64,000 nt of DNA, from NCBI GenBank assembly GCA_051530055.1, contig CM121341.1, forward strand, positions 372,001 through 436,000, written 5' to 3'. The stretch's first letter is position 1, and each line of letters begins with the position of its first letter. The stretch comes from Neoechinorhynchus agilis (taxonomy: Eukaryota; Animalia; Acanthocephala). Under the pieces are notes generated by a model. That model made no database searches. It was not told the origin of the DNA and was given only the letters and a program-made list of their open reading frames with translations. This document shows positions 11,500 to 64,000 of this stretch, piece by piece. Both the position numbers and the translations under genes were made by a program.

Positions 11500-12611
11500 A
11501 TGAAATACACTTCAAAATTCTCATTCGTAATCGACAAAAGAAAATCTCCACTGCCATAAAACCAGGAATTCAACAGCTAACTAGGACGTTTCGGGTCTTA
11601 ACTCTAAAAATTACTCTTTTAGCGATGGAAAAAAGTTAAATTTTGCGTAAACTTTAGGACAGTACAAACGCAGGACACGGATAACGTTAACTTAAAAATT
11701 CTCCCATCAATCGGTAAAAACGCATCACCGATGAAATTGCTCGCTGTTCAACATTTGACTTGGACGTTTTATGGTTTTATTCGATAAAATCAAGAGCATA
11801 ATTTTAGCGATAGAAAATATCAATTTAAAAATTTACGTTTACTTTTGAACCATGCAAACGCAGAACATGGATAAAATACACGTACGAAGTTCTCCCGTGA
11901 GCCCGGAGTTCAGCAATTGACTTGAACGTTTCAGATTTTAACTCGCAAAATTAAAAATACTATTTTAGAGATAGAAAAAACAATTGAAAACTTTTTTGCC
12001 AACCTTGGACAAATAAAACAAAGAAGCTGGATAAAACTAGCTTCAAAATCCTCACACGAGTCGATAAAATAATAACACCGATGTCATGGAACCCGAATTT
12101 CAACAGTTTGCTCAGACGCTTCGGATTTTAACTCGGAAAACTAAAATTTACCATTTCAGCGGTTGAAGAACACCAATTTAAAATTTGAATCCACTTTTGG
12201 ACATCGAAAACTTATCAGGTGGAAAACCAATAAATTTTCGTATTGATCGATAAAAGAAAATCTCTCAAGTAATTGCTCGCCGTTAAACAGTTGACTTGGA
12301 CGTTTCGGGCTTTAACTTGATAAAATTTGGAGAATTATTTTATTGAAAGAAAAACAAAATTTAAAATGAATCGATAAAAGCAGATATCTGAATCGATTGC
12401 TCCCTGTTTAACCGTTGAGTCGGATGTTTCAGAGCTTCGCTCCATAAAATGTGGAGCTTTTTTTTAATGATTGCAAAAATTAACATTTTACGTCCACTTT
12501 TGGCAAATGAAAATGCATGACGTCAATAAAATACACTACAAAATTCTCCCATAAATCTATAAAAGCATAACTCTGAGAAGATTGCCCGCTCTACAACGGT
12601 TCACTCGGAAT
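11500..12611. repeat. Old, diverged monomers of the 187-bp satellite family
   Basis: Recognisable blocks such as attgctcgctgttcaac, gataaaatcaagag, acttttgaaccatgcaaacgcagaacatggataaaatac recur at roughly 187-bp spacing. Left boundary approximate. Confidence 0.75.
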
Positions 12612-21600: not shown

Positions 21601-22198
21601 TTGAGTCTAATGTTTCGGGGTTTCACTTGATAAAATATGGAGAATTTTTTAAGTAAAAGAAAAAATTTGAATTTCTACGTCCACTTTTGGACAACGAAAT
21701 CGCTGGACTTGGATAGAATATACTTTATAACTTTCAAATGGATCTTTAAGAAAGCCGATCACTGAATCGATTGCTCGCTGTTAAACCGTTGAGTCTAATG
21801 TTTCGGGGTTTCACTTGATAAAATATGGAGCATTTTTTAAGTAAAAGAAAAAATTTGAATTTCTACGTCCACTTTTGGACAACGAAATCGCTGGACTTGG
21901 ATAGAATATACTTTATAACTTTCATATGGATCTTTAAAAAGCCGATCACTGAATCGATTGCTCGCTGTTCAACCGTTGAGTCTAATGTTTCGGGGTTTCA
22001 CTTGATAAAATATGGAGCATTTTTTAAGTAAAAGAAAAAATTTGAATTTCTACGTCCACTTTTGGACAACGAAAACGCAGGACTTGGATAGAATATACTT
22101 TATAACTTTCATATGGATCTTTAAAAAGTCGATCACTGAATCGATTGCTCGCTGTTAAACCGTTGAGTCTAATGTTTCGGGGTTTCACTTGATAAAAT
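12612..22198. repeat. Satellite A: tandem array of 187-bp monomers, about 51 copies
   Basis: Repeated spurious ORFs start at 14903, 15090 and 15277 (period 187). The monomer is A/T-tract rich with small hairpins GTCCA-CTTT-TGGAC and TCAA-CCG-TTGA. No spacers, no HHR core on either strand. Confidence 0.98.
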
Positions 22199-25034: not shown

Positions 25035-25053
25035 TCTCCAGTCCCTGCTTTAA

Positions 25054-28000: not shown

Positions 28001-31000
28001 ACAGCATCTCAAATTCCACCTTCCTAAAGGATTTTCTCAGGATGATGTTTAAGATTGGGGATGCGGTGATCATAATCCTTGTGATAAAATATTTAAACTA
28101 GATATTCAGATATTACGCGAGGAAGCCTCGTCTCTTAATTCACCGGAAAAGGTTTTGGTAAGAAGCCTCGTCTCTTAATTCACCGGAAAAGGTTTTAGTT
28201 TTTCTTATCCGAGATTCTGATCACAGCATCTCAAATTCCACCTTCCTAAAGGATTTTCTCAGGATGATGTTTAAGATTGGGGATGCGGTGATCATAATCC
28301 TCGTGATAAAATATTTAAACTAGATATTCAGGTATTCCGCGAGGAAGCCTCGTCTCTTAATTCACCGGAAAAGGTTTTAGTTTTTCTTATCCGAGATTCT
28401 GATCACAGCATCTCAAATTCCACCTTCCTAAAGGATTTTCTCAGGATGATGTTTAAGATTGGGGATGCGGTGATCATAATCCTTGTGATAAAATATTTAA
28501 ACTAGATATTCAGATATTACGCGAGGAAGCCTCGTCTCTTAATTCACCGGAAAAGGTTTTGGTTTTTTCTTATCCGAGATTCTGATCACAGCAAGCCTCG
28601 TCTCTTAATTCACCGGAAAAGGTTTTGTTTTTCTTATCCGAGATTCTGATCACAGCATCTCAAATTCCACCTTCCTAAAGGATTTTCTCAGGATGATGTT
28701 TAAGATTGGGGATGCGGTGATCATAATCCTCGTGATAAAATATTTAAACTAGATATTCAGGTATTCCGCGAGGAAGCCTCGTCTCTTAATTCACCGGAAA
28801 AGGTTTTAGTTTTTCTTATCCGAGATTCTGATCACAGCATCTCAAATTCCACCTTCCTAAAGGATTTTCTCAGGATGATTTTAAGATTGGGGATGCGGTG
28901 ATCATAATCCTTGTGATAAAATATTTAAACTAGATATTCAGATATTACGCGAGGAAGCCTCGTCTCTTAATTCACCGGAAAAGGTTTTAGTTTTTCTTAT
29001 CCGAGATTCTGATCACAGCATCTCAAATTCCACCTTCCTAAAGGATTTTCTCAGGATGATGTTTAAGATTGGGGATGCGGTGATCATAATCCTTGTGATA
29101 AAATATTTAAACTAGATATTCAGATATTACGCGAGGAAGCCTCGTCTCTTAATTCACCGGAAAAGGTTTTAGTTTTTTCTTATCCGAGATTCTGATCACA
29201 GCATCTCAAATTCCACCTTCCTAAAGGATTTTCTCAGGATGATGTTTAAGATTGGGGATGCGGTGATCATAATCCTCGTGATAAAATATTTAAACTAGAT
29301 ATTCAGGTATTCCGCGAGGAAGCCTCGTCTCTTAATTCACCGGAAAAGGTTTTAGTTTTTTCTTATCCGAGATTCTGATCACAGCATCTCAAATTCCACC
29401 TTCCTAAAGGATTTTCTCAGGATGATGTTTAAGATTGGGGATGCGGTGATCATAATCCTTGTGATAAAATATTTAAACTAGATATTCAGGTATTACGCGA
29501 GGAAGCCTCGTCTCTTAAGTCACCGGAAAAGGTTTTAGTTTTTTCTTATCCGAGATTCTGATCACAGCATCTCAAATTCCACCTTCCTAAAGGATTTTCT
29601 CAGGATGATGTTTAAGATTGGGGATGCGGTGATCATAATCCTCGTGATAAAATATTTAAACTAGATATTCAGGTATTCCGCGAGGAAGCCTCGTCTCTTA
29701 ATTCACCGGAAAAGGTTTTAGTTTTTCTTATCCGAGATTCTGATCACAGCATCTCAAATTCCACCTTCCTAAAGGATTTTCTCAGGATGATTTTTAAGAT
29801 TGGGGATGCGGTGATCATAATCCTCGTGATAAAATATTTAAACTAGATATTCAGATATTACGCGAGGAAGCCTCGTCTCTTAATTCACCGGAAAAGGTTT
29901 TAGTTTTTTCTTATCCGAGATTCTGATCACTGCATCTCAAATTCCACCTTCCTAAAGGATTTTCTCAGGATGATGTTTAAGATTGGGGATGCGGTGATCA
30001 TAATCCTTGTGATAAAATATTTAAACTAGATATTCAGATATTACGCGAGGAAGCCTCGTCTCTTAATTCACCGGAAAAGGTTTTAGTTTTTTCTTATCCG
30101 AGATTCTGATCACAGCATCTCAAATTCCACCTTCCTAAAGGATTTTCTCAGGATGATGTTTAAGATTGGGGATGCGGTGATCATAATCCTCGTGATAAAA
30201 TATTTAAACTAGATATTCAGATATTACGCGAGGAAGCCTCGTCTCTTAATTCACCGGAAAAGGTTTTATTTTTTTCTTATCCGAGATTCTGATCACTGTA
30301 TCTCAAATTCCACCTTCCTAAAGGATTTTCTCAGGGTGATGTTTAAGATTGGGGATGCGGTGATCATAATCCTTGTGATAAAAATATTTAAACTAGATAT
30401 TCAGATATTACGCTACGAAGCCTCGTCTCTTAATTAACCGGAAAAGGTTTTGGTTTTTTCTTATCCGAGATTCTGATCACAGCATCTCAAATTCCACCTT
30501 CCTAAAGGATTTTCTCAGGATGATGTTTAAGATTGGGGATGCGGTGATCATAATCCTCGTGATAAAATATTTAAACCAGATATTCAGGTATTCCGCGAGG
30601 AAGCCTCGTCTCTTAGTTCACCGGAAAAGGTTTTAGTTTTTCTTATCCGAGATTCTGATCACAGCATCTCAAATTCCACCTTCCTAAAGGATTTTCTCAG
30701 GATGATGTTTAAGATTGGGGATGCGGTGATCATAATCCTCGTGATAAAATATTTAAACTAGATATTCAGGTATTCCGCGAGGAAGCCTCGTCTCTTAATT
30801 CACCGGAAAAGGTTTTGGTTTTTTCTTATCCGAGATTCTGATCACAACCTCGTCTCTTAATTCACCGGAAAAGGTTTTTGTTTTTCTTATCCGAGATTCT
30901 GATAACAGCATCTCAAATTCCACCTTCCTGAAGGATTTTCTCAGGATGATGTTTAAGATTGGGGATGCGGTGATCATAATCCTCGTGATAAAATATTTAA

Positions 31001-34000
31001 ACTAGATATTCAGGTATTCCGCGAGGAAGCTTCGTCTCTTAATTCACCGGAAAAGGTTTTAGTTTTTTCTTATCCGAGATTCTGATCACAGCATCTCAAA
31101 TTCCACCTTCCTAAAGGATTTTCTCAGGATGATGTTTAAGATTGGGGATGCGGTGATCATAATCCTTGTGATAAAAATATTTAAACTAGATATTCAGATA
31201 TTACGCTACGAAGCCTCGTCTCTTAATTCACCGGAAAAGGTTTTGGTTTTTTCTTATCCGAGATTCTGATCACAGCATCTCAAATTCCACCTTCCTAAAG
31301 GATTTTCTCAGGATGATTTTTAAGATTGGGGATGCGGTGATCATAATCCTCGTGATAAAATATTTAAACTAGATATTCAGATATTACGCGAGGAAGCCTC
31401 GTCTCTTAATTCACCGGAAAAGGTTTTGGTTTTTTCTTATCAGAGATTCTGATCACAGCAAGCCTCGTCTCTTAAGTCACCGGAAAAGGTTTTAGTTTTT
31501 TCTTATCCGAGATTCTGATCACTGTATCTCCCACTCCACCTTCCTAAAGGATTTTCTCAGGATGATGTTTAAGATTGGGGATGCGGTGATCATAATCCTC
31601 GTGATAAAATATTTAAACTAGATATTCAGGTATTCCGCGAGGAAGCCTCGTCTCTTAATTCACCGGAAAAGGTTTTAGTTTTTCTTATCCGAGATTCTGA
31701 TCACAGCATCTCCCACTCCACCTTCCTAATGGATTTTCTCAGGATGATTTTTAAGATTGGGGATGCGGTGATCATAATCCTTGTGATAAAATATTTAAAC
31801 CAGATATTCAGGTATTCCGCGAGGAAGCCTCGTCTCTTAGTTCACCGGAAAAGGTTTTAGTTTTTTCTTATCCGAGATTCTGATCACTGTATCTCAAATT
31901 CCACCTTAATAAAGGATTTTCTCCGGATGATGTTTAAGATTGGGGATGCGGTGATCATAATCCTCGTGATAAAATATTTAAACCAGATATTCAGGTATTC
32001 CGCGAGGAAGCCTCGTCTCTTAGTTCACCGGAAAAGGTTTTAGTTTTTCTTATCCGAGATTCTGATCACAGCATCTCCCACTCCACCTCCCTAAAGGATT
32101 TTCTCAGGATGATGTTTAAGATTGGGGATGCGGTGATCATAATCCTTGTGATAAAATATTTAAACTAGATATTCAGGTATTCCGCGAGGAAGCCTCGTCT
32201 CTTAATTCACCGGAAAAGGTTTTAGTTTTTTCTTATCCGAGATTCTGATCACAGCATCTCAAATTCCACCTTCCTAAAGGATTTTCTCAGGATGATGTTT
32301 AAGATTGGGGATGCGGTGATCATAATCCTTGTGATAAAATATTTAAACTAGATATTCAGGTATTCCGCGAGGAAGCCTCGTCTCTTAATTCACCGGAAAA
32401 GGTTTTAGTTTTTTCTTATCCGAGATTCTGATAACAGCATCTCAAATTCCACCCTCCTAAAGGATTTTCTCAGGATGATGTTTAAGATTGGGGATGCGGT
32501 GATCATAATCCTCGTGATAAAATATTTAAACTAGATATTCAGGTATTGCGCGAGGAAGCCTCGTCTCTTAAGTCACCGGAATAGGTTTTAGTTTTTTCTT
32601 ATCCGAGATTCTGATCACAGTATCTCCCACTCCACCTCCCTAAAGGATTTTCTCAGGATGATGTTTAAGATTGGGGATGCGGTGATCATAATCCTTGTGA
32701 TAAAATATTTAAACTAGATATTCAGGTATTCCGCGAGGAAGCCTCGTCTCTTAATTCACCGGAAAAGGTTTTAGTTTTTCTTATCCGAGATTCTGATCAC
32801 AGCATCTCAAATTCCACCTTCCTAAAGGATTTTCTCAGGATGATTTTTAAGATTGGGGATGCGGTGATCATAATCCTCGTGATAAAATATTTAAACTAGA
32901 TATTCAGGTATTCCGCGAGGAAGCCTCGTCTCTTAATTCACCGGAAAAGGTTTTAGTTTTTTCTTATCCGAGATTCTGATCACAGCATCTCAAATTCCAC
33001 CTTCCTAAAGGATTTTCTCAGGATGATGTTTAAGATTGGGGATGCGGTGATCATAATCCTCGTGATAAAATATTTAAACTAGATATTCAGGTATTCCGCG
33101 AGGAAGCCTCGTCTCTTAATTCACCGGAAAAGGTTTTAGTTTTTTCTTATCCGAGATTCTGATCACAGCATCTCAAATTCCACCTTCCTAAAGGATTTTC
33201 TCAGGATGATGTTTAAGATTGGGGATGCGGTGATCATAATCCTCGTGATAAAATATTTAAACTAGATATTCAGATATTACGCGAGGAAGCCTCGTCTCTT
33301 AATTCACCGGAAAAGGTTTTAGTTTTTTCTTATCCGAGATTCTGATCACAGCATCTCAAATTCCACCTTCCTAAAGGATTTTCTCAGGATGATGTTTAAG
33401 ATTGGGGATGCGGTGATCATAATCCTCGTGATAAAATATTTAAACTAGATATTCAGATATTACGCGAGGAAGCCTCGTCTCTTAATTCACCGGAAAAGGT
33501 TTTAGTTTTTTCTTATCCGAGATTCTGATCACAGCATCTCAAATTCCACCTTCCTAAAGGATTTTCTCAGGATGATGTTTAAGATTGGGGATGCGGTGAT
33601 CATAATCCTCGTGATAAAATATTTAAACTAGATATTCAGATATTACGCGAGGAAGCCTCGTCTCTTAATTCACCGGAAAAGGTTTTAGTTTTTTCTTATC
33701 CGAGATTCTGATCACAGCATCTCAAATTCCACCTTCCTAAAGGATTTTCTCAGGATGATGTTTAAGATTGGGGATGCGGTGATCATAATCCTCGTGATAA
33801 AATATTTAAACTAGATATTCAGGTATTACGCGAGGAAGCCTCGTCTCTTAATTCACCGGAAAAGGTTTTAGTTTTTCTTATCCGAGATTCTGATCACAGC
33901 ATCTCAAATTCCACCTTCCTAAAGGATTTTCTCAGGATGATGTTTAAGATTGGGGATGCGGTGATCATAATCCTTGTGATAAAATATTTAAACTAGATAT

Positions 34001-35950
34001 TCAGGTATTCCGCGAGGAAGCCTCGTCTCTTAATTCACCGGAAAAGGTTTTAGTTTTTTCTTATCCGAGATTCTGATCACTGTATCTCAAATTCCACCTT
34101 CCTAAAGGATTTTCTCAGGATGATGTTTAAGATTGGGGATGCGGTGATCATAATCCTTGTGATAAAATATTTAAACTAGATATTCAGGTATTCCGCGAGG
34201 AAGCCTCGTCTCTTAATTCACCGGAAAAGGTTTTAGTTTTTCTTATCCGAGATTCTGATCACAGCATCTCAAACTCCACCTTCCTAAAGGATTTTCTCAG
34301 GATGATTTTTAAGATTGGGGATGCGGTGATCATAATCCTTGTGATAAAATATTTAAACTAGATATTCAGATATTACGCGAGGAAGCCTCGTCTCTTAATT
34401 CACCGGAAAAGGTTTTGGTAAGCCTCGTCTCTTAATTCACCGGAAAAGGTTTTGTTTTTCTTATCCGAGATTCTGATCACAGCATCTCAAATTCCACCTT
34501 CCTAAAGGATTTTCTCAGGATGATGTTTAAGATTGGGGATGCGGTGATCATAATCCTTGTGATAAAATATTTAAACTAGATATTCAGATATTACGCGAGG
34601 AAGCCTCGTCTCTTAATTCACCGGAAAAGGTTTTAGTTTTTTCTTATCCGAGATTCTGATCACAGCATCTCAAATTCCACCTTCCTAAAGGATTTTCTCG
34701 GGATGATTTTTAAGATTGGGGATGCGGTGATCATAATCCTCGTGATAAAATATTTAAACTAGATATTCAGGTATTCCGCGAGGAAGCCTCGTCTCTTAAT
34801 TCACCGGAAAAGGTTTTAGTTTTTCTTATCCGAGATTCTGATCACAGCATCTCCCACTCCACCTTCCTAAAGGATTTTCTCGGGATGATTTTTAAGATTG
34901 GGGATGCGGTGATCATAATCCTTGTGATAAAATATTTAAACTAGATATTCAGGTATTCCGCGAGGAAGCCTCGTCTCTTAATTCACCGGAAAAGGTTTTA
35001 GTTTTTCTTATCCGAGATTCTGATCACAGCATCTCAAATTCCACCTTCCTAAAGGATTTTCTCAGGATGATTTTTAAGATTGGGGATGCGGTGATCATAA
35101 TCCTTGTGATAAAATATTTAAACTAGATATTCAGATATTACGCGAGGAAGCCTCGTCTCTTAATTCACCGGAAAAGGTTTTGTTTTTTCTTATCCGAGAT
35201 TCTGATCACAGCATCTCAAATTCCACCTTCCTAAAGGATTTTCTCAGGATGATGTTTAAGATTGGGGATGCGGTGATCATAATCCTCGTGATAAAATATT
35301 TAAACTAGATATTCAGATATTACGCGAGGAAGCCTCGTCTCTTAAGTCACCGGAAAAGGTTTTAGTTTTTTCTTATCCGAGATTCTGATCACAGCATCTC
35401 GAATTCCACCTTCCTAAAGGATTTTCTCAGGATGATGTTTAAGATTGGGGATGCGGTGATCATAATCCTCGTGATAAAATATTTAAACTAGATATTCAGG
35501 TATTCCGCGAGGAAGCCTCGTCTCTTAATTCACCGGAAAAGGTTTTAGTTTTTCTTATCCGAAATTCTGATCACAGCATCTCCCACTCCACCTCCCTAAA
35601 GGATTTTCTCAGGATGATTTTTAAGATTGGGGATGCTGTGATCATAATCCTTATGATAAAAGTATTTAAACAAGATATTCAGATATTACGCGAGGCAGCC
35701 TCGTCTCTTAAGTAACCGGAAAAGGTTTTAGTTTTTCTTATCCGAAATTCTGATCACAGCATCTCCCACTCCACCTCCCTGAAGCATTTTCTCAGGATGA
35801 TGTTTAAGATTGGGGATGCGGTGGTCATAATCCTCGTGATAAAATATTTAAACTAGATATTCAGATAATACGCGAGGAAGCCTCGTCTCTTAATTCACCG
35901 GAAAAGGTTTTAGTTTTATCTTATCCGAGATTCTGATCACAGCATCTCCA
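25054..35950. repeat. Satellite B: tandem array of 182/183-bp monomers, about 60 copies, with an internal fold-back
   Basis: ccggaaaagg recurs at 25054, 25237, 25419 and 25602. Internal inverted repeat gattctgatcacagcatc / gatgcggtgatcataatc (16/18), extending outward, plus hairpin CGAGG-AAG-CCTCG. Confidence 0.98.
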
Positions 35951-36831
35951 AATCTACGAAAGGCTTGACGTTCATTTCTCAACGACGATAGAAGCTCGAT
36001 GTGTTTCTTCTGCTCCAAAAGGGAAGTAACGTTGCATAAAACCAAAGAGTTTTAAAATGGTATTGCCTATCGTTCGGCCGTAGTTTAGAATTTTATTTTA
36101 TATTTGTGATTTGGTTTTTGAGGCATTTTCACGGGTTTTTATAAGGGTGTTGATCACTTGTCTTTGAGACTCGCTCAAAGGTTCCTTTCAAAAGTATCTA
36201 TTGAGATTCGATCAAACTTCTTGTATTAAATCTTAAAACTTAAATTTTATGGTATTTTTAGGCTCTATCGATCTGAGATGCAATAGATGGCCAGTGAAAT
36301 CTAAGAATTTAGTATTATTAAAGAAACAGCTTAAAGGGTGGTGGTTTTAGAGTTGAAATAGCACTTTAATTTGTGACAAAATTTCGTACATTCTGCCTAT
36401 GCCACATTATTACAGAAATTGAGAATCGAAATATTATTGCCGTTGCTAATATTCGTTTAGTGGCGTGATTGTAAACTTGGATTGCACGCTTTACATTATT
36501 TTGCACTTTGGAGATATTTGCCCTTCAATGTTCATCGTGTTTATAATATCGATAGAGTTTCGTCGGTTATAGAACTTTTGCTATTTATTTGTTCACTTGA
36601 TTTGTAGGTCTCACGAATATTATCCATTTATTCCCCCCCGCGACTTTTAAAAGGCGGTTGAAACATCAAGTTGCGATGCTTTTCGACAATTTTGGAAAAA
36701 ACAGCCTTAAAAATAGATTTTTTTCCCTTAGTTTTTGCGAAATTCTCCGTCAAGTTTAAGCAAGCACGTAAATTGGAAATCATCCTGGATTCCACGAATT
36801 TTTATTGGAAATCTAAAGAAATATATTTAGC

Positions 36832-36976
36832 TATGGATTGTGCTGATCATAATTGCCCGGATAAAACGTATTTTATTAGATTGAAATATTTGGCGGAAAG
36901 CTGATGAAGCTTTCTGTTTGGAACTATTTCAATAAAATATGTTTTATCCGTGGAATTATGATCACCACAATTCATA
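36832..36976. mobile_element. Fold-back (inverted) pLTR-like fragment with a degenerate hammerhead, satellite-C family
   Basis: Arms tatggattgtgctgatcataattgcccggataaaacgtattttatt and aataaaatatgttttatccgtggaattatgatcaccacaattcata are near reverse complements. The centre reads CTGATGA (36901-36907)...GAAC TAT T TCAATAAAATA, versus satellite C GAAA TAT T TCAATAAAATA. Confidence 0.75.
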
Positions 36977-44049: not shown

Positions 44050-44273
44050 GCAATTGGAATTATTGTTTAAGTCTACGCCCTGTAAATGATTATTTATTAA
44101 AGACGTTTCGAACCTCATCGGGTTATCGATAGAGTCTATTACTAACAAACAAAGTGATGATGAACCCGACGAGGTTCGTAACGTCTTTAATAAATAATCA
44201 TTTGCGGGGTGTAGACCTAAACAATAATTCTAATCACATTCCCCGGTACCTCACATATCGACATCAAGCAATT
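44050..44273. mobile_element. 212-bp fold-back pLTR-like insertion with hammerhead remnants and a 6-bp target duplication
   Basis: GCAATT at 44050-44055 and 44268-44273. Inverted arms at about 44053-44124 and 44163-44234, then a 33-nt unique tail. Removing the insert plus one TSD restores the knuckle KCLNCGINHKAYDSRC. Confidence 0.85.
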
Positions 44274-48264: not shown

Positions 48265-48700
48265 TTACCAGGTGAAGAATTGTTGACAAGTCCATTTGGA
48301 AGTCTTTGAATCCAACGCGACACAATCTTGTTTGTATTTTCCTGTGCAAACAAACTTGATAAATGCGTACACGATTGTACCTTCAATAACTTCATCTTTT
48401 TCCGCCATAAAGATCTTCTTCATGTTGCTTGTAAGTTTTTTCAGCAACCTCAACAAATCCGACAAGAGACGGATGAAATATTTTTGAATTAATAAATCAA
48501 TCTTTATTCTTCTCATCAAACCAAAGAACACATAAATGAACAATTTCTTTACAAAAATCTTACTATTGATATCGATTGACGTGGACTCTTCAACGCACGG
48601 ATTGATATTTGACCAAAACGCAACCTTCTTTATCATTACAATGTCCGCACGGCACATTTTAGAACCAATTTTTAGCGCTAACAAAAATCTCCATTGGTTT
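48265..48700 (-). pseudogene. Decayed coding fragment, possibly a DNA-transposase C-terminus (P-element/THAP9-like)
   Basis: Frame-broken pieces VPCGHCND, HPSLVGFVEVAEKTYK and KIVSRWIQRL loosely resemble CxxC...PSxxv...aExxfr. Shares 23/25 nt with the interior of the MITE at 49078-49102. Confidence 0.25.
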
Positions 48701-48729
48701 TTTCTGGATAGACATTTAAAGAAGTATAC

Positions 48730-48907
48730 TTTTGGTGAAAATAATCCCGGTCATAATCTATTTGATTTAGATTTATAGGGGAAACATTTCAAGCGAAGTA
48801 AACTCACCTGATCAGTCATTAAGTTTCAAACAATGACTGATGAGGGGAGGTTACTTCGTTCGAAATATTTCAAATATATGTTATGATCCGGATTATTTTC
48901 ACCAAAA
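48730..48907. mobile_element. Fold-back pLTR-like element with one core-intact and one decayed inverted hammerhead, satellite-C family
   Basis: Plus strand: TGA CTGATGA (48837-48843) ggggaggttacttcgttc GAAA TAT T TCA (to 48872). 48781-48820 is its mutated reverse complement. Outer arms ttttggtgaaaataatcc...cataa pair with ttatg...ggattattttcaccaaaa. Confidence 0.8.
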
Positions 48908-49022
48908 TTCTAATTTGATTTACCCGTAGGATTTTCTCCGTCGATGATTTAATGATATGGATATAACGTAAAGAAATGTCGCAGTTTGGCTTTTAAAAAT
49001 CATTCTTTTCATAAAGAAGTGT

Positions 49023-49188
49023 TTGTTTATGCCGGTGAAAAATTAAAGTGATTTTATTGATTCCAATTGTTTTCGGCGGCACAATCGTGTACGCGTTTAT
49101 CACAAAGTTGTTGTTAAAGTGTTTTAGTCGTGTACCGAAAACAATTGGAATCGAAAAAATCGCTTTAATTTTTCACCGGTATAAACAA
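49023..49188. mobile_element. MITE-like element, 166 bp, with 54-bp terminal inverted repeats
   Basis: 49023-49076 versus the reverse complement of 49135-49188 match at 50/54. No clear TSD. Confidence 0.8.
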
Positions 49189-49312
49189 CCATGAACAATT
49201 CAATCGCTTCGATATCACGACGAAGCGAAAAATCGCGCTTGTTGTTTTAAAAAAATTTCGTGCGCGGATATGGATTATGGCATTGAGGTCTTGAGACCTC
49301 CTGATCCCTCGG

Positions 49313-52887: not shown

Positions 52888-53282
52888 GATCCGTTAGTGT
52901 TTGTATTAATTTGCTTTTGCTGCAAGCAAAGTCCATAAACGTTCATCCGAGTAATAAATCTGATATTTTTAAAACACGTACTAATATTAACGAACAAAAA
53001 GGCTAATTTTAACAATTCTTACAATTTACGAAGTCCAGCTTCTTTAAGAGAATGCTTTAGTTCTATTTTAAATAATGAGAATATAATGAACAAAACAGTT
53101 TGCGCGAAATTCTTTTTCTTAGTCGTGCCTTACTAGTATTAGTTTCTCCACCGCTTTCTCGCAACCAGAAAGCACACAGAAATCCTTTCACCTTGTGCCG
53201 AGAAATTATAACACTTTTCTAATTTCGTCTTGCCCTGAATCCATCTTATGATTGCCAGATACTTTCATACATAAATCTTTTT

Positions 53283-54500
53283 CTAAGAATCATCCCAATT
53301 AACATTTAGGCTGATATCCGTGCTGTGATCAATAAGATCATTCCTGACCTGCCAGATATGAACCTCCTCCTCACCGGCACAAGATGCCACGATAACGTTT
53401 TCCGGATCCTCGTAAATCGCGAAATCGTGAAGCATAGACGAATGTCCTGAGTGTGTAAAGATGAGCTCCTCAAACTCATGGTCGTCATCGTAGATCTCAT
53501 CCGCAAATGTATCATTTCCAATCAAGTTTAGATCATAGATGGCGATCTTTCGATCGTCTCCACCCGAAAAGATCATCGATTTCCTGACGGGATGGAACTG
53601 AACATTGAGAATTCCACTTTGGTGTTCAGTCTCGACCAAATGAAGAACGCTAGCTGCAGCCCGAATATCCACCAGTTTTATATCTGGATCAGTGCCCCCG
53701 ATTGCGACGAGAAAATCATAGTATCTATTCTGACTAAGGCAGTTTATTTCACCATCTTTAAAGCCTTCCATTGCCATCGAAGGGTTTATAACACTTTCTC
53801 TAATATCCCAAATACGGAAAAAATTGTCGTCGCATACAGTCAAAAGGACGTTTGGATTAGAGGCGTGCCATATGACCTCGCCAATCGCGCCCGTGTGTCC
53901 TTGAAGAACAGTCGTAGGTCCTTGTGAAACCTCCACATCCCATACAGCCACTTTGGTGTCCCAAGAACCTGTTGCTAAACGACCTCTAATTTCCGGATTC
54001 CAACTGATCGTGTACCCATGATCGGTATGATATTCGAGTTGGGTTACTGGGCTTAAGTTCACATCACCTCGATCCTTTATACCTTTCAAATCGTAAATAT
54101 AAAGCTTAGCATTTGAAGAGAAAGTGGCCAACAAATCGTCCCCAGGATTGCATCGAAGTCTGTTGACCTCTCCGCCGGAGTGGTCGTATTTGTAAAGAGT
54201 TGAGGATGAAAATGCCTTGTACGTACGGCCCATGACATTTTGTGATAAAACTTGCGTTGGACTCAAGGAAACCGTCTCAATCTCGTTTAGGAACAGCTCA
54301 CCGCGACCATTGAAGTACGACGTCCCACAAAAAAGCATCATTCTTTGTTCGTCTTTGAGAAACTCACATGACATCAAACATCCCATAGTGGACAATATCG
54401 ATATCTGATCGTAAATCAATCGAGTGCTCTGACGCCATGCCTCCGAATCATCTGATGTCGTCGAACTGCTAGAGTCGTCGCTTTCTGATGCGCCGTCCAT
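53283..54500 (-). CDS. Divergent RBBP4/7 (CAF-1 p48 / NURF55)-like WD40 histone-binding protein, intronless
   Basis: EAWRQSTRLIYD, HSGGEVNRLRCNP, HTDHGYTISWNP...LATGSWDTKVAVWDV, GHTGAIGEVIWH, ELIFTHSGHSSMLHDF follow the RBBP4 blade order, but with many substitutions. Confidence 0.8.
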   Translation of the reverse strand: MDGASESDDSSSSTTSDDSEAWRQSTRLIYDQISILSTMGCLMSCEFLKDEQRMMLFCGTSYFNGRGELFLNEIETVSLSPTQVLSQNVMGRTYKAFSSSTLYKYDHSGGEVNRLRCNPGDDLLATFSSNAKLYIYDLKGIKDRGDVNLSPVTQLEYHTDHGYTISWNPEIRGRLATGSWDTKVAVWDVEVSQGPTTVLQGHTGAIGEVIWHASNPNVLLTVCDDNFFRIWDIRESVINPSMAMEGFKDGEINCLSQNRYYDFLVAIGGTDPDIKLVDIRAAASVLHLVETEHQSGILNVQFHPVRKSMIFSGGDDRKIAIYDLNLIGNDTFADEIYDDDHEFEELIFTHSGHSSMLHDFAIYEDPENVIVASCAGEEEVHIWQVRNDLIDHSTDISLNVNWDDS

Positions 54501-55119
54501 TTATCTGCAAAAAAACGGTTCGTTATTCCAAATATGAATAATAATCCGATTTTTTCACTATTTCCATCAAAACGAAAAGTGCGTTGAAGAAAGGAAGAAA
54601 CAAGTGATTTAACCTCAACAAAAACCTTAAATCACAATAGGACTAGACGCATCCTTTTAGATATATTAAGTAATCCAAACGACGTCCATCAAAACATCCT
54701 TTCTGAAATATAAACGGAGAAGCGATTCCTAAATTTTTTTATTTTATTCGATTGAGATGTGTCACATCGACAATTCTACCATCCCGAAGGATCTTCTCTC
54801 AATGATTCGCATCGCTAAGAACGAGTCTAAATCTCTTCGCAAATGAACTAATCCCCTACCCCACGGTTCAAAAGGAATAACTTCGAGACCAGACCGAAGG
54901 TATCCCTATCACGGTGATTTTGCAACTCCATCAAAAAATAAAACATATCAAAATGCCATTATTTTTATCATTTCAATCTCGGATTTTACAATTTAAGTGT
55001 TTTCCGATGTCAACGAATCGCCAATAAGGGATGATACTTCTGGATCAATAACCAACCTAAGAACGTGGCATTTTTCAGCGTTAAATAATCTGTTAATTTT
55101 TCAATTGCGGTGACCCATC

Positions 55120-58100
55120 ATAAAATCTATTTTATTGAAATATTTCGAAGGGATACCTCATCAGTCGTCTAAAAAGTCTTTAATTGCTTTGTATTGTACT
55201 GCTTGGGTACGCGGGATCGCTATTCCCGAGGTTCGAAGACCAAATGTCCAACAGAATCCTTAGCGTCCTTGATTGAGATAATTACGTCTCCAACTAAATC
55301 ATTTCGAAGGAATTTTTCTTAACGATACTGAAATCGGAGATGTGGAGGCCATAATCCCTTCCGGATAAAACCTATTTCATTGAAATATTTCGCAAGGATA
55401 CCTCATCAGTCGTCTAAAAAGTCTTTAATTGCTTTGTATTGTACTGCTTGGGTACGCGGGATCGCTATTCCCAAGGTTCGAAGACCAAATGTCCAACCGA
55501 ATCCTTAGCGTCCTTGATTGAGATAATTACGTCTCCAACAAAATCATTTCGAAGGAATTTTTCTTAACGATACTGGAATCGGAGATGTGGAGGCCATAAT
55601 CCCTCCCGGATAAAATCTATTTTATTGAAATATTTCACTGAGATACCTCATCGATGTTCAAAAAGTCTTTAATTGCTTTGTATTGTACTGCTTGGGTACG
55701 CGGGATCGCTATTCCCGAGGTTCGAAGACCAAATGTCCAACCGAATCCTTAGGGTCCTTGATTGAGATAATTACGTCTCCAACAAAATAATTTCGAAGGA
55801 ATTTTTCTTAACGATACTGGAATCGGAGATGTGGAGGCCATAATCCCTCCCGGATAAAATCTATTTTATTGAAATATTTCGCAAGGATACCTCATCAGTC
55901 GTCTAAAAAGTCTTTAATTGCTTTGTATTGTACTGCTTGGGTACGCGGTATCGCTATTCCCGAGGTTCGAAGACCCAATGTCCAACAGAATCCTTAGCGT
56001 CCTTGATTGAGATAATTACGTCTCCAACAAAATAATTTCGAAGGAATTTTTCTTAACGATACTGAAATCGGAGATGTGGAGGCCATAATCCCTTCCGGAT
56101 AAAATCTATTTTATTGAAATATTTCGCAGGGATACCTCATCAGTCATTCAAAAAGTCTTTAATTACTTTGTATTGTACTGCTTGGGTACGCGGGATCGCT
56201 ATTCCCGAGGTTCGAAGACCCAATGTCCAACAGAATCCTTAGCGTCCTTGATTGAGATAATTACGTCTCCAACTAAATCATTTCGAAGGAATTTTTCTTA
56301 ACGATACTGAAATCGGAGATGTGGAGGCCATAATCCCTCCCGGATAAAATCTATTTTATTGAAATATTTCGCAGGGATACCTCATCAGTCATTCAAAAAG
56401 TCTTTAATTGCTTTGTATTGTACTGCTTGGGTACGCGGGATCGCTATTCCCGAGGTTCGAAGACCCAATGTCCAACAGAATCCTTAGCGTCCTTGATTGA
56501 GTTAATTACGTCTCCAACAAAATAATTTCGAAGGAATTTTTCTTAACGATACTGGAATCGGAGATGTGGAGGCCATAATCCCTCCCGGATAAAATCTATT
56601 TTATTGAAATATTTCGCAGGGATACCTCATCTACAGTCATTCAAAGTCTTTAATTGCTTTGTATTGTACTGTGGGTACGCGGGATCGCTATTCCCGAGTT
56701 CGAAGGCCAAATGTCCAACCGAATCCTTAGCGTCCTTGATTGAGATAATTACGTCTCCAACAAAATCATTTCGAAGGAATTTTTCTTAACGATACTGAAA
56801 TCGGAGATGTGGAGGCCATAATCCCTCCCGGATAAAATCTATTTTATTGAAATATTTCGCAAGGATACCTCATCAGTCGTCTAAAAAGTCTATAATTGCT
56901 TTGTATTGTACTGCCTGGGTACGCGGGATCGCTATTCCCGAGGTTCGAAGACCAAATGTCCAACCGAATCCTTAGCGTCCTTGATTGAGATAATTACGTC
57001 TCCAACAAATAATTTCGAAGGAATTTTTCTTAACGATACTGAAATCGGAGATGTGGAGGCCATAATCCCTCCCGGATAAAATCTATTTTATTGAAATATT
57101 TCGCAAGGATACCTCATCAGTCGTCTAAAAAGTCTATAATTGCTTTGTATTGTACTGCTTGGGTACGCGGGATCGCTATTCCCGAGGTTCGAAGACCCAA
57201 TGTCCAACAGAATCCTTAGCGTCCTTGATTGAGATAACTTCGTCTCCAACAAAATCATTTCGAAGGAATTTTTCTTAACGATACTGGAATCGGAGATGTG
57301 GAGGCCATAATCCCTTCTGGATAAAATCTATTTTATTAAAATATTTCGCAAGGATACCTCATCAGTCGTCTAAAAAGTCTTTAATTGCTTTGTATTGTAC
57401 TGCTTGGGTACGCGGGATCGCTATTCCCGAGGGTTCGAAGACCCCAATGTCCAACAGAATCCTTAGCACGTCCTTGATTGAGATAACTTCGTCTCCAACA
57501 AAATCATTTCGAAGGAATTTTTCTTAACGATACTGGAATCCGGAGATGTGGAGGCCATAATCCCTTCTGGATAAAATCTATTTTATTAAAATATTTCACC
57601 AGGATAGCTCCATCAGTCGTCTAAAAAGTCTTTAATTGCTTTGTATTGTACTGCTTGGGTACGCGGGATCGCTATTCCCTAGGTTCGAAGACCAAATGTC
57701 CAACCGAATCCTTAGGGTCCTTGATTGAGATAATTACGTCTCCAACAAAATAATTTCGAAGGAATTTTTCTTAACGATACTGGAATCGGAGATGTGGAGG
57801 CCATAATCCCTTCCGGATAAAATCTATTTTATTGAAATATTTCGCAAGTATACCTCATCAGTCATCTAAAAAGTCTTTAATTGCTTTGTATTGTACTGCT
57901 TGGGTACGCGGGATCGCTATTCCCGAGGTTCGAAGACCCAATATCCAACCGAATCCTTAGCGTCCTTGATTGAGATAATTGCGTCTCCAACAAAATAATT
58001 TCGAAGGAATTTTTCTTAACGATACTGGAATCGGAGATGTGGAGGCCATAATCCCTTCCGGATAAAATCTATTTTATTGAAATATTTCGCAGGGATACCT

Positions 58101-61100
58101 CATCAGTCGTCTAAAAAGTCTTTAATTGCTTTGTATTGTACTGCTTGGGTACGCGGGATCGCTATTTCCGAGGTTCGAAGACCCAATATCCAACCGAATC
58201 CTTAGCGTCCTTGATTGAGATAACTACGTCTCCAACAAAATAATTTCGAAGGAATTTTTCTTAACGATACTGGAATCGGAGATGTGGAGGCCATAATCCC
58301 TTCCGGATAAAACCTACTTCATTGAAATATTTCGCAAGGATACCTCATCAGTCGTCTAAAAAGTCTTTAATTGCTTTGTATTGTACTGCTTGGGTACGCG
58401 GGATCGCTTTTCCCAAGGTTCGAAGACCAAATGTCCAACCGAATCCTTAGCGTCCTTGATTGAGATAATTACGTCTCCAACAAAATAATCTCGAAGGAAT
58501 TTTTCTTAACGATACTGGAATCGGAGATGTGGAGGCCATAATCCCTTCCGGATAAAACCTACTTCATTGAAATATTTCGCAAGGATACCTCATCAGTCGT
58601 CTAAAAAGTCTTTAATTGCTTTGTATTGTACTGCTTGGGTACGCGGGATCGCTATTTCCGAGGTTCGAAGACCCAATGTCCAACCGAATCCTTAGCGTCC
58701 TTGATTGAGATAACTACGTCTCCAACAAAATAATTTCGAAGGAATTTTCATAACGATACTACTGGAATCGGAGATGCGGAGGCCATAATCCCGGATAAAA
58801 TTATCTTATTGGAAAATATTTCGCAAGGATACCTCATCAGTCGTCTAAAAAGTCTTTAATTGCTTTGTATTGTACTGCTTGGGTACGCGGGATCGCTATT
58901 CCCAGGTTCGAAGACTTAATTCCAAACGAATCCTTAGCGTCCTTGATTGAGATAACTACGTCTCCAACAAAATCATTTCGAAGGAATTTTTTCTTAACGA
59001 TACTGGAATCGGAGATGTGGAGGCCATAATCCTTCCGGATAAAATCTATTTTATTGAAATATTTCATGAGATACCTCATCAGTCGTCTAAAGTCTTTAAT
59101 TGCTTTGTATTGTACTGCTTGGGTACGCGGGATCGCTATTTCCGGTTCGAAGACCCAATGTCCAACAGATCCTTAGCGTCCTTGATTGAGATAACTACGT
59201 CTCCAACAAAATAATTTCGAAGGAATTTTTCTTAACGATACTGGAATCGGAGATGTGGAGGCCATAATCCCTTCCGGATAATATCTATCTTATTGAAATA
59301 TTTTGCAAGGATACCTCATCAGTCGTCTAAAAAGTCTTTAATTGCTTTGTATTGTACTGCTTGGGTACGCGGGATCGCTATTCCCGAGGTTCGAAGACCC
59401 AATGTCCAACCGAATCCTTAGCGTCCTTGATTGAGATAACTACGTCTCCAACAAAATAATTTCGAAGGAATTTTTCTTAACGATACTGGAATCGGAGATG
59501 TGGAGGCCATAATCCCTTCCGGATGAAATCTATTTTATTGAAATATTTCGCAAGGATACCTCATCAGTCGTCTAAAAAGTCTTTAATTGCTTTGTATTGT
59601 ACTGTAGGTACGCGGGATCGCTATTCCCGAGGTTCGAGAGCCAAATGTCCAACCGAATCCTTAGCGTCCTTGATTGAGATAATTACGTCTCCAACTAAAT
59701 CATTTCGAGGGAATTTTTCTTAACGATACTGGAATCGGAGATGTGGAGACCATAATCCCTTCCGGATAAAATCTATTTTATTGAAATATTTCGCAAGGAT
59801 ACTTCATCAGTCATCTAAAAAGTCTTTAATTCTTTGTATTGTACTGCTTGGAGGCATAGGATGCTATTTCCGAGGATCGAAGACCGTGTCAACCGAATCC
59901 TTAGCGTCCTTGATTGAGATAACTACGTCTCCAACAAAATAATTTCGAAGGAATTTTTCTTAACGATACTGGAATCGGAGATGTGGAGGCCATAATCCCT
60001 TCGGGATAAAATCTATTTTATGAAATATTTTGCAAAGGATACACTCATCTAAGTCGTCTAAAAAGTCTTTAATTGCTTTGTATTGTACTGCTTGAATTTT
60101 CGGGATCGCTATTCCCGAGGTTCGAAGACCCAATGTCCAACCGAATCCTTAGCGTCCTTGATTGAGATAACTACGTCTCCAACAAAATAATTTCGAAGGA
60201 ATTTTTCTTAACGATACTGGAATCGGAGATGTGGAGGTCATAATCCCTTCCGGATAAAATCTATTTTATTGAAATATTTCGCAAGGATACCTCATCAGTC
60301 GTCTAAAAAGTCTTTAATTGCTTTGTATTGTACTGCTTGGGTACGCGGGATCGCTATTCCCGAGGTTCGAAGACCAAATGTCCAACCGAATCCTTAGCGT
60401 CCTTGATTGAGATAATTACGTCTCCAACAAAATAATTTCGAAGGAATTTTTCTTAACGACACTGAAATCGGAGATGTGGAGGCCATAATCCCTTCCGGAT
60501 AAAACCTACTTCATTGAAATATTTCGCAAGGATACCTCATCAGTCGTCTAAAAAGTCTTTAATTGCTTTGTATTGTACTGCTTGGGTACGCGGGATCGCT
60601 ATTCCCGAGGTTCGAAGACCCAATATCCAACCGAATCCTTAGCGTCCTTGATTGAGATAATTACGTCTCCAACAAAATAATTTCGAAGGAATTTTTCTTA
60701 ACCATACTGGAATCGGAGATGTGGAGGCCATAATCCCTTCCGGATAAAATCTATTTTATTGAAATATTTCGCAAGGATACCTCATCAGTCGTCTAAAAAG
60801 TCTTTAATTGCTTTGTATTGTACTGCTTGGGTACGCGGGATCGCTATTCCCAAGGTTCGAAGACCCGATATCCAACCGAATCCTTAGCGTCCTTGATTGA
60901 GATAATTACGTCTCCAACAAAATAATTTCGAAGGAATTTTTCTTAACGATACTGGAATCGGAGATGTGGAGGCCACAATCCCTTCCGGATAAAATCTATT
61001 TTATTGAAATATTTCGCAAGGATACCTCATCAGTCGTCTAAAAAGGCTTTAATTGCTTTGTATTGTACTGCTTGGGTACGCGGGATCGCTATTCCCAAGG

Positions 61101-63280
61101 TTCGAAGACCCAATATCCAACCGAATCCTTAGCGTCCTTGATTGAGATAACTACGTCTCCAACAAAATAATTTCGAAGGAATTTTTCTTAACGATACTGG
61201 AATCGGAGATGTGGAGGCCATAATCCCTTCCGGATAAAATCTATTTTATTGAAATATTTCGCAAGGATACCTCATCAGTCGTCTAAAAAGTCTTTAATTG
61301 CTTTGTATTGTACTGCTTGGGTACGCGGGATCGCTATTCCCAAGGTTCAGACCCAATATCAACCGAATCTATAGCCTTCCTTGATTGAGATAACTACGTC
61401 TCAACAAAATAATTTCGAAGGAATTTTCTACCGCGATACTGGAATCGGAGATGTAGTGACCATAATCCCTTCCGGATAAAATCTATTTTATTGAAATATT
61501 TCCGCAAGGATACCTCATCAGTCGTCTAAAAAGTCTTTAATTGCTTTGTATTGTACTGCTTGGGTACGCGGGATCGCTATTCCCGAGGTTCGAAGACCCA
61601 ATGTCCAACCGAATCCTTAGCGTCCTTGATTGAGATAATTACGTCTCCAACAAAATCATTTCGAAGGAATTTTTCTTAACGATACTGAAATCGGAGATGT
61701 GGAGGCCATAATCCCTTCCGGATAAAATCTATTTTATTGAAATATTTCGCATGGAAACCTCATCAGTCATTCAAAAAGTCTTTAATTGCTTTGTATTGTA
61801 CTGCTTGGGTACGCGGGATCGCTATTCCCAAGGTTCGAAGACCAAATGTCCAACCGAATCCTTAGCGTCCTTGATTGAGATAACTACGTCTCCAACAAAA
61901 TCATTTCGAAGGAATTTTTCTTAACGATACTGGAATCGGAGATGTAGTGACCATAATCCCTTCCGGATAAAACCTATTTCATTGAAATATTTCGCAAGGA
62001 TACCTCATCAGTCGTCTAAAAAGTCTTTAATTGCTTTGTATTGTACTGCTTGGGTACGCGGGATCGCTATTCCCGAGGTTCGAAGACCCAATGTCCAACC
62101 GAATCCTTAGCGTCCTTGATTGAGATAATTACGTCTCCAACAAAATCATTTCGAAGGAATTTTCTTAACGATACTGGAATCGGAGATGTGGAGGCCATAA
62201 TCCCTTCCGGATAAAATCTATTTTATTGAAATATTTCGCAAGGATACCTCATCAGTCGTCTAAAAAGTCTTTAATTGCTTTGTATTGTACTGCTTGGGTA
62301 CGCGGGATCGCTATTCCTAGGTTCGAAGACCAAATGTCCAACCGAATCCTTAGCGTCCTTGATTGAGATAATTACGTCTCCAACAAAACAATTTCGAAGG
62401 AATTTTTCTTAACGATACTGGAATCGGAGATGTGGAGCCCATAATCCCTTCCGGATAAAACCTATTTCATTGAAATATTTCGCAAGGATACCTCATCAGT
62501 CGTCTAAAAAGTCTTTAATTGCTTTGTATTGTACTGCTTGGGTACGCGGGATCGCTATTCCCGAGGTTCGAAGACCCAATGTCCAACCGAAATCCTTAGC
62601 GTCCTTGATTGAGATAATTACGTCTCCAACAAAATAATTTCGAAGGAATTTTTCTTAACGATACTGGAATCGGAGATGTGGAGGCCATAATCCCTTCCGG
62701 ATAAAATCTATTTTATTGAAATATTTCGCAAGGATACCTCATCAGTCGTCTAAAAAGTCTTTAATTGCTTTGTATTGTACTGCTTGGGTACGCGGGATCG
62801 CTATTCCCGAGGTTCGAAGACCCAATATCCAACCGAATCCTTAGCGTCCTTGATTGAGATAATTACGTCTCCAACAAAATAATTTCGAAGGAATTTTTCT
62901 TAACGATACTGGAATCGGAGATGTGGAGGCCATAATCCCTTCCGGATAAAATCTATTTTATTGAAATATTTCGCAAGGATACCTCATCAGTCGTCTAAAA
63001 AGTCTTTAATTGCTTTGTATTGTACTGCTTGGGTACGCGGGATCGCTATTCCCGAGGTTCGAAGACCCAATGTCCAACCGAATCCTTAGCGTCCTTGATT
63101 GAGATAATTACGTCTCCAACAAAATAATTTCGAAGGAATTTTTCTTAACGATACTGGAATCGGAGATGTGGAGGCCATAATCCCTTCCGGATAAAATCTA
63201 TTTTATTGAAATATTTCGCAAGGATACCTCATCAGTCGTCTAAAAAGTCTTTAATTGCTTTGTATTGTACTGCTTGGGTA
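55120..63280 (-). repeat. Satellite C: tandem array of 245-bp monomers, about 33 copies, most carrying a minimal hammerhead on the minus strand (retrozyme-like array)
   Basis: ccggataaaa recurs at 62942 and 63187 (period 245). Each monomer contains tgaaatatttcgcaaggatacctcatcagtc, the reverse complement of GA CTGATGA G GTA-TCCT-TGC GAAA TAT T TCA. Confidence 0.95.
63207..63238 (-). ncRNA. Representative satellite-C hammerhead ribozyme (last monomer)
   Basis: CUGAUGA = 63235-63229; stem II G-C, U.G, A-U with UCCU loop; GAAA = 63217-63214; AUAU palindromic stem III; predicted cleavage after U at 63210 (AUU triplet); short proximal stem I extended by a distal uuuua/uaaaa helix. Confidence 0.75.
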
Positions 63281-63737
63281 CTGGATTGTGATGACTACAT
63301 CTCCAGCTCTATCATCCCGAGTGGTGGGTGTGAGCCTTTTCGGATAACCGAAGTTTTCTAAACTATCGATCACCATTAGCATATCCTTCAGTTTTTGAAT
63401 TTTAAGGCATAAATTAACGTAGGTTTCCTTTCTTGTTAATTGGATGACTTTTTGAATCTGTCGAAGAGTAAAACATATGAAAAAATCGATTTTCTTAATT
63501 TCAAAGTACTTAAAGGAATCGCTTATGCATACCTTTTTATTTAAACTTTGTCTAAATTTTTCTGAGCGATCTTTATTTTATAAACGTGTAAATACTAGGT
63601 TATTGCATCTCTTCCTCGGCTTTTTAGTTTTCCTTTTTGGCATGAAGCCACACCGATCTCTTACATCAGAGAAGTGATTGAATCACTGAGACTCTTAATG
63701 CGACTACGGTATACGAGTTTGTACTCATCCTTCCGGA

Positions 63738-64000
63738 GAAGTTTAGTCATCAGAACTTAAGGGTAGTTATAAATAACTCGAAAATTGAACAAGGGACGAA
63801 ATTGTTGGAAAACCGAAGATAAAGCTACCGAATTCCATAGAAGTTTTTCCAGAAATTACAGATATTGCTAAAACCGAACAGAAGTTTAATCATCAGAACT
63901 TAAGGGTAGTTATAAATAACTCGAAAATTGAACAAGGGACGAAATTGTTGGAAAACCGAAGATAAAGCTACCGAATTCCTAGAAGTTTTTAGAGAAATTA
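63738..64000. repeat. Start of a fourth tandem repeat, about 143-bp unit, cut by the window edge
   Basis: gaagttta.tcatcagaacttaagggtagttataaataactcg at 63738 and 63881; the second copy runs to the edge. Confidence 0.75.

Follow-up and report, generated by a model that had tools for sequence, protein, structure and literature searches.

Satellite C of Neoechinorhynchus agilis: a tandem hammerhead satellite, probably Penelope-derived and with a probably weak or relic ribozyme

Tandem repeats encoding hammerhead ribozymes include newt satellite 2, Schistosoma Sm-alpha and cave-cricket pDo500, for which transcripts and cleavage have been demonstrated and whose hammerheads possess 4-bp helices II and defined loops. 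The minimal hammerhead ribozymes (min-HHRs) of Penelope-like elements (PLEs) have a complete core but no helix III and loop 3 of their own, so that helix III forms only in a dimer; they share an unpaired nucleotide between A9 and G10.1, a G10.1-C11.1 pair and palindromic positions 15.2-16.2 (PMC4209133). Helix II of these ribozymes measures 6-8 bp and helix I 4-5 bp (2 bp in D. virilis), the motifs occur in dual arrangement on opposite strands 100-700 bp apart, and self-cleavage in vitro is very low (PMC4209133). PLE insertions typically take the form of partial tandems accompanied by an inverted copy truncated at its 5' end, and from the acanthocephalan Pomphorhynchus laevis canonical PLEs bearing hammerhead ribozymes have been documented (10.1101/2021.04.23.441226). 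The retrozymes of metazoans, tandem repeats of 150-450 bp that carry canonical type I hammerheads, are strongly expressed as highly self-paired linear and circular RNAs (PMC7229834), and have been argued to derive from pseudo-long terminal repeats (pLTRs) (10.64898/2026.07.22.740005). For Acanthocephala, our literature search found no description of a hammerhead satellite, only the PLE survey of Pomphorhynchus laevis. Here we describe satellite C, a tandem array in a 64,000-nt stretch of the acanthocephalan Neoechinorhynchus agilis (assembly GCA_051530055.1, contig CM121341.1, positions 372,001 to 436,000), referred to below as the window and numbered from its first nucleotide. Satellite C is probably a retrozyme-like hammerhead satellite derived from a Penelope-type element, with a ribozyme that is weak or a relic.

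Satellite C occupies positions 55120-63281 and carries its motif on the minus strand. Tandem Repeats Finder (TRF) reports a period of 245 bp, 33.4 copies, 94% matches and 1% indels. The array was split into 33 anchored monomers and one leading partial unit and then aligned, giving 34 motif sites, one per 245-bp unit, with the units arranged head-to-tail. The minus-strand consensus reads AAAGACUUUUUAGACGA-CUGAUGA-G-GUA-UCCU-UGC-GAAA-UA-U-U, followed across the predicted scissile bond by UCAAUAAAAUAGAUUUUAUCCGG; the motif stretch itself is GACGA-CUGAUGA-G-GUA-UCCU-UGC-GAAA-UA-U-U, followed by UCAAUAAAAUAG. Both the array of about 33 units and the reading of the minus strand as a conserved core with a 3-bp stem II and a loopless AUAU stem III, as given in the first-pass annotation of the window, agree with the TRF interval, the alignment and the consensus.

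The motif of monomer m10 (60754-60798, minus strand), taken as representative and documented by its sequence, a descriptor match and folding energies, has C3 at 60788 and U17 at 60763. In this monomer CUGAUGA and an extra G precede helix II (GUA/UGC with loop UCCU), GAAA and a loopless helix III, AUAU; helix I consists of GA/UC, a 3x2 internal loop and UUUUA/UAAAA. By standard hammerhead numbering the predicted scissile bond lies at 60762-60763 on the minus strand, 3' of U17 (60763) and 5' of U1.1 (60762), and in every unit with C3 at plus-strand position p it falls between p-25 (U17) and p-26. The extra nucleotide after CUGAUGA is G in the consensus and A in m14, and the succession CUGAUGA-G-G...C-GAAA provides the G10.1-C11.1 pair. 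GAAA-UA-U forms the palindrome AUAU, which leaves no loop 3, makes 15.2-16.2 palindromic and restricts helix III to the dimer. Loop 2 has 4 nt and varies among units (UCCU, UCCC, UACU), and there is no closed loop 1. A perfect 10-nt palindrome, GAAATATTTC (60759-60768), spans G12 to C1.2 and can pair fully in a dimer.

The motif sites were scored with a minimal-hammerhead descriptor that comprises the core, an optional extra nucleotide, at least 3 contiguous helix II pairs, GAAA, palindromic 15.2/16.2, U16.1, H17 and at least 2 helix I pairs. Exact CTGATGA is kept at 30 of the 34 sites, and 25/34 pass the full descriptor, with the whole core (C3-A9, G12-A14 and the A15.1-U16.1 pair) in register and U17 as the H17 nucleotide. 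Core-breaking changes are found in m07, m13, m16, m23, m27 and m31, in agreement with the earlier remark that a few monomers have mutated cores. Three proximal helix I pairs are present in only 4 of the 25 passing sites; the 'uuuug/aauga' variant, already described as gaining a third proximal pair, occurs in m06, m28, m29 and others.

Chance occurrences of such a motif are rare. The descriptor was run on 30 Mb of sequence simulated with a first-order Markov model of the non-satellite DNA of the window, both strands counted, and gave 3 matches, or 6 with helix III lengths of 0-6 allowed. This corresponds to 0.1-0.2 matches per Mb and, for a unit of 245 bp, to about 2.5-5e-5. Within the window itself the descriptor matches only the satellite C array and one further site, at 48837 on the plus strand. 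This site belongs to a head-to-head fold-back of the same family at 48722-48915, detected as inverted repeats I4 and I5, with a fold of -78 kcal/mol and a descriptor match. Its right arm (plus strand) bears the intact motif AAUGA-CUGAUGA-G-(18 nt)-GAAA-UA-U-U followed by UCA, with C3 at 48837 and U17 at 48869, while the left arm carries the unit on the minus strand with a mutated core (CUGAUCA, GAAAUG). Compared with the AAUGA variant of satellite C, the core blocks of the dispersed copy are identical at 14/14 and 11/11 positions (25/25), against 3/15 in helix II, where the lengths differ by 7 nt, 29/57 in the downstream module and 1/14 in the upstream sequence. The motif of satellite C is thus a member of a real hammerhead lineage, and chance is rejected mainly because the core blocks are conserved around a helix II that has been replaced.

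Under the alternative that the motif arose by chance in an AT-rich, fold-back DNA repeat resembling a miniature inverted-repeat transposable element (MITE), GAAATATTTC would be kept for a DNA-level reason and no link to ribozymes would exist. We consider this improbable, although several observations speak for it. All helices are marginal. Rfam hammerhead models gave no match at the gathering score across the whole window or at E<=10 in 55000-57500 and 48650-49000, and the only Rfam matches obtained were sub-threshold miRNA-hairpin models on the fold-back; the missing hammerhead hit carries little weight, since the Rfam models include the helix III hairpin that min-HHRs lack. A search of a very large metagenome collection with CTGATGAG-N(8-30)-CGAAATATTTCAA returned 13 contigs, all of them unrelated chance matches with neither helix II nor the flanks of the family, so that this pattern by itself does occur by chance. 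A chance origin has to contend with the low descriptor rate given above, and with the 14-nt block AAUGACUGAUGAGG, identical at 14/14 positions between satellite C and the 48.8-kb copy while the adjacent sequence is 20-51% identical. It would also leave all the incidental hallmarks of min-HHRs (the extra nucleotide, G10.1-C11.1, the palindromic helix III and H17) to coincidence.

The relatives of satellite C in the window, sought by blastn with its consensus, by inverted-repeat detection and by folding, bear on the same question. A unit of about 95 nt is common to the fold-backs and satellite C; it consists of the hammerhead, then AAUAAAAUAGAUUUUAUCCGG, then GAUUAUGAUCACCACAAUUC (alignment A1). 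The second fold-back of the family, at 36832-36976, has the 3' module in common and a decayed hammerhead (CTGATGA, 13 nt, GAAC). Retention of the palindrome and the downstream module in this hammerhead-less element would suit a chance motif, but the in-register remnants indicate an ancestral motif that decayed later. The element has TA at its start and end (TATGGATTGTG...CACAATTCATA), as in MITEs of the Tc1/mariner type, which again would suit a chance motif within a DNA repeat.

Satellite B (25053-35953, about 183 bp, delimited by TRF and compared by blastn with the satellite C consensus) carries the 3' module both ways in each unit, as GATTATGATCACC in the minus and as GATTCTGATCACA in the plus orientation. 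Its monomer contains no CUGAUGA, and the satellite resembles a fold-back that was amplified in tandem and lacks the hammerhead core. A short stretch at 54772-54807, within the spacer between satellite C and the neighbouring WD40 gene, has about 3.6x the single-copy DNA depth; contigs there diverge on both sides into sequence containing GGGATTATGATCACC, which makes it a fragment of the dispersed module family.

Whether the ribozyme of satellite C functions is a separate matter from its ancestry. Helix II (G-C, U.G, A-U; loop UCCU) has a predicted energy of +0.9 kcal/mol. The major variant has 2 proximal pairs in helix I, followed by the 3x2 loop and 5 A-U pairs, and the distal strand of this helix competes with a local hairpin, AUAAAA-UAGA-UUUUAU. 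The ancestral AAUGA helix I strand is retained in the 48.8-kb copy and in only about 5 monomers, so that the amplified master was already without the third pair. An explicit domain-swapped double hammerhead is predicted at +2.6 to +3.8 kcal/mol. The minimum free energy (MFE) homodimer given by RNAcofold, at -19.0 kcal/mol, has the 10-nt palindrome GAAAUAUUUC paired along its full length, which buries G12-A14 together with the scissile site; the active dimer fold is more than 20 kcal/mol less favourable.

The first-pass annotation had proposed asking whether core positions are more conserved than their flanks. They are not discernibly so: the 13 core columns hold 12 deviations, a mean of 0.92 per column where the remaining columns average 1.35, this level is equalled by 34% of circular shifts, and the 32-nt hammerhead segment ranks 158/245. 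The most conserved stretch of the monomer sits just upstream of that segment. Core columns thus mutate about as freely as the rest of the unit, which is part of what had been named in advance as speaking against the retrozyme-like reading. An apparent minus-strand RNA-structure signal in a single monomer (z = -1.9, 62% paired, against a plus-strand z of 0.04) was lost across 24 cleavage-to-cleavage monomers and in comparison with the plus strand; the mean MFE was -55.1 kcal/mol for the minus and -53.6 kcal/mol for the plus strand, with shuffled sequences at about -53.8 kcal/mol. On these predictions the ribozyme is probably weak or a relic.

At least 4 RNA runs from the organism contain words of satellite C. 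Contigs were compared over 53200-55522. In DNA run X1 single-copy sequence at the WD40 gene has a depth of 125 and satellite C about 50,000-100,000, an excess of about 400-800x. The RNA runs X2, X3 and X10 give the WD40 gene depths of 472, 474 and 94, and satellite C about 20, 18 and 8, or 4-9% of the depth of its neighbour. Trace genomic DNA amounting to a few hundredths of genomic coverage could account for this signal. The RNA runs consist of assembler contigs of unknown library type, without strand or end information, and contig depth is a poor measure of expression, so these values argue only against abundant expression.

These data bear most directly on the possibility that satellite C is an active retrozyme, in which minus-strand multimers would self-cleave through double hammerheads of neighbouring units, perhaps with a PLE protein or chaperone, and the resulting 245-nt monomers would be closed into circles by a tRNA ligase and returned to DNA by a PLE reverse transcriptase. 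We regard this as unlikely, though less so than a chance motif. The presence of all min-HHR hallmarks, the catalytic core intact in 25-30 of the 34 units and the occurrence of satellite C words in RNA are in its favour. So is the precedent of the D. virilis PLE, in which a 2-bp helix I is accepted (PMC4209133), together with the poor in vitro cleavage, or need for protein, of PLE hammerheads. The three changes in the AAUGA variant maintain or add helix I pairs, and a star-like pattern of variation among the monomers would suit a burst from one master. Activity is difficult to reconcile, however, with an RNA depth of 4-9% of one neighbouring gene despite the several-hundred-fold excess of DNA, with an active dimer fold disfavoured by more than 20 kcal/mol, and with the unprotected core. 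Published retrozymes are moreover abundant and highly self-paired (PMC7229834), while satellite C folds at -55.1 against about -53.8 kcal/mol for shuffled sequence, with no strand asymmetry.

The retrozyme-like interpretation of the first-pass annotation is therefore supported in part. A PLE-type min-HHR in a head-to-tail array, homologous to a dispersed copy, is supported; a working retrozyme is not. In particular, cleavage of a minus-strand transcript at intervals of 245 nt, with re-integration of the resulting monomers or circles, is opposed by the marginal helices, the buried core in the dimer and the absence of core protection, and draws no support from the trace RNA in contigs or from the window, which holds no Penelope open reading frame (ORF).

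The limits of the RNA data are among several points that weigh against satellite C being a Penelope-derived satellite with a weak or relic ribozyme. The missing Rfam match is another. Covariation support for the helices is thin, because helix II is marginal in the dispersed copy as well (its 18-nt insert, closed by G10.1-C11.1, is predicted at +1.0 kcal/mol) and because there is a single diverged relative. Being TA-bounded, the fold-backs could represent MITE-like DNA transposons instead of Penelope insertions. ORFs of the window contain no reverse transcriptase (RT) or GIY-YIG domain, so that no autonomous partner is present there, and the window offers no pLTR for comparison. As for the ribozyme, its weakness is a prediction from nearest-neighbour energies, which ignore the tertiary contacts of hammerheads, and the verdict is tempered by the finding that a PLE hammerhead can be protein-assisted and can lack read ends in RNA-seq (PMC11167929).

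Weighing these points, we still favour the Penelope-derived satellite with a weak or relic ribozyme. On this account satellite C would be a non-coding unit, tandemly amplified from a short element made up of a Penelope-type min-HHR and a 3' module of about 60-75 nt, and the same element family would also have given rise to the head-to-head fold-backs and to satellite B. The ribozyme keeps its catalytic nucleotides in about three quarters of the units, but its helices would have eroded, helix II having become about 7 nt shorter than in the dispersed copy and helix I having lost its third pair in the major variant. Cleavage, if any, would proceed only through a dimer of neighbouring units, probably poorly and perhaps only with the help of protein. 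The units would have been amplified in a burst, either by RNA-mediated tandem insertion or by DNA-level expansion, and would then have decayed with no visible protection of the core. One small family, a hammerhead with a 3' module, would thereby have produced two satellites and dispersed fold-backs within 40 kb.

The structure of the array is compatible with such a history. Variants among the satellite C monomers are star-like, 128 singleton against 39 shared, and no higher-order period was detected among the monomers, a combination that fits a single burst and neutral decay thereafter. On its upstream side (5' on the minus strand) the array begins mid-unit. At the downstream end (55095-55140, minus strand) the final unit continues into the 3' module in the form seen in the dispersed copy, TTTTAT(CCG)GATGGGTCACCGCAATTG (alignment A1). 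The CGG insertion behind 55119 is present in DNA run X1 and RNA run X10, both of which read TTTTATCCGGATGGGTCACCGCAATTG there. Since the array starts mid-unit and ends with the full 3' module, it appears truncated 5' and complete 3'. A candidate inverted monomer fragment at the upstream end was dismissed: it rests on one 8-mer with E about 1 and is not significant. On the plus strand, at 55190-55250 and equivalent positions in each unit, lies a B-box-like sequence of RNA polymerase III, GGTTCGAAGAC, in a stem-loop (CGGGA-7 nt-UCCCG, enclosed by GGGU/ACCC). ARAGORN called no tRNA despite this B-box-like sequence; the region may be a piece derived from a tRNA or a short interspersed element, on the strand opposite to the hammerhead.

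A more speculative possibility, which we consider about as improbable as a chance motif, is that satellite C is a living, pared-down retrozyme whose cleavage would require a dimer assisted by protein, the GAAAUAUUUC palindrome serving as an on/off switch. The palindrome may then alternate between an inactive duplex and an active double hammerhead, and the 3-bp helix II together with the all-A-U loopless helix III may lie below the size of the min-HHRs in the literature compared here. If this were so, a unit of hammerhead plus module would also seed fold-backs and satellites in this acanthocephalan genome. Apart from this possibility, satellite C offers a hammerhead miniaturised by nature, on which the lower limits of helices II and III for dimeric cleavage could be tested. 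It also counsels caution, as a complete core by itself is no evidence of a working retrozyme.

The window is rich in genes: the satellites are separated and surrounded by Brix, Fis1-like, DEAD-box helicase C-terminal, WD40, homeobox, bromodomain and Sel1 genes. A further satellite with a 187-bp unit extends over 12611-22198 (TRF), and at 63700-64000 a tandem repeat of about 143 bp begins, which displays CTGATGA on the minus strand (63753, 63896) but is not a hammerhead, as it has no GAAA partner. Fold-back elements are common between the genes. An unrelated one at 44053-44234 has 72-nt arms, 90% complementary, and folds at -105 kcal/mol; read on the minus strand, its left arm (CCGAUGAGGUUCGAAACGUC) is hammerhead-like (ACGU, GUC) but has U4C and no helix II. 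A long hairpin of unrelated sequence at 49020-49191 has 57-nt arms, 91% complementary, at -88 kcal/mol. At the WD40 gene (53283-54500, minus strand), the match between contigs of the RNA runs and the genome ends precisely at 54504, immediately past a polypyrimidine-AG acceptor (tttttttgcAG, followed by ATAAA) and 4 nt before the ATG. Beyond this point they bear non-genomic leaders of about 21 nt, different in two runs, which look like spliced-leader trans-splicing or a distant 5' exon.

Among described systems, satellite C resembles the min-HHRs of PLEs in its type I topology, complete core, extra nucleotide, G10.1-C11.1 pair, palindromic loopless helix III and H17, and its family resembles them in having opposite-strand copies close together and low intrinsic stability. 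It differs in the length of helix II (3 bp against 6-8) and of proximal helix I (2-3 bp against 4-5), in an all-A-U helix III embedded in a longer palindrome in competition with the active fold, and in a context in which neither an ORF for RT or endonuclease nor a pLTR is seen within the window. With metazoan non-LTR retrozymes it shares head-to-tail repeats with one type I hammerhead each, its 245 bp falling within their range of 150-450 bp. The retrozyme hammerheads are canonical, with contacts between loops 1 and 2, whereas the motif of satellite C is minimal and lacks a closed loop 1; unlike retrozymes, satellite C also shows trace-level RNA in contigs and folds no better than shuffled sequence. 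As in newt satellite 2, Schistosoma Sm-alpha and pDo500, the hammerhead encoded in every unit has an unstable helix III; the hammerheads of those three satellites work as dimers, while that of satellite C is known here from its sequence. The link between hammerhead satellites and Penelope-like elements is well documented in animals, and satellite C mainly adds Acanthocephala to it.

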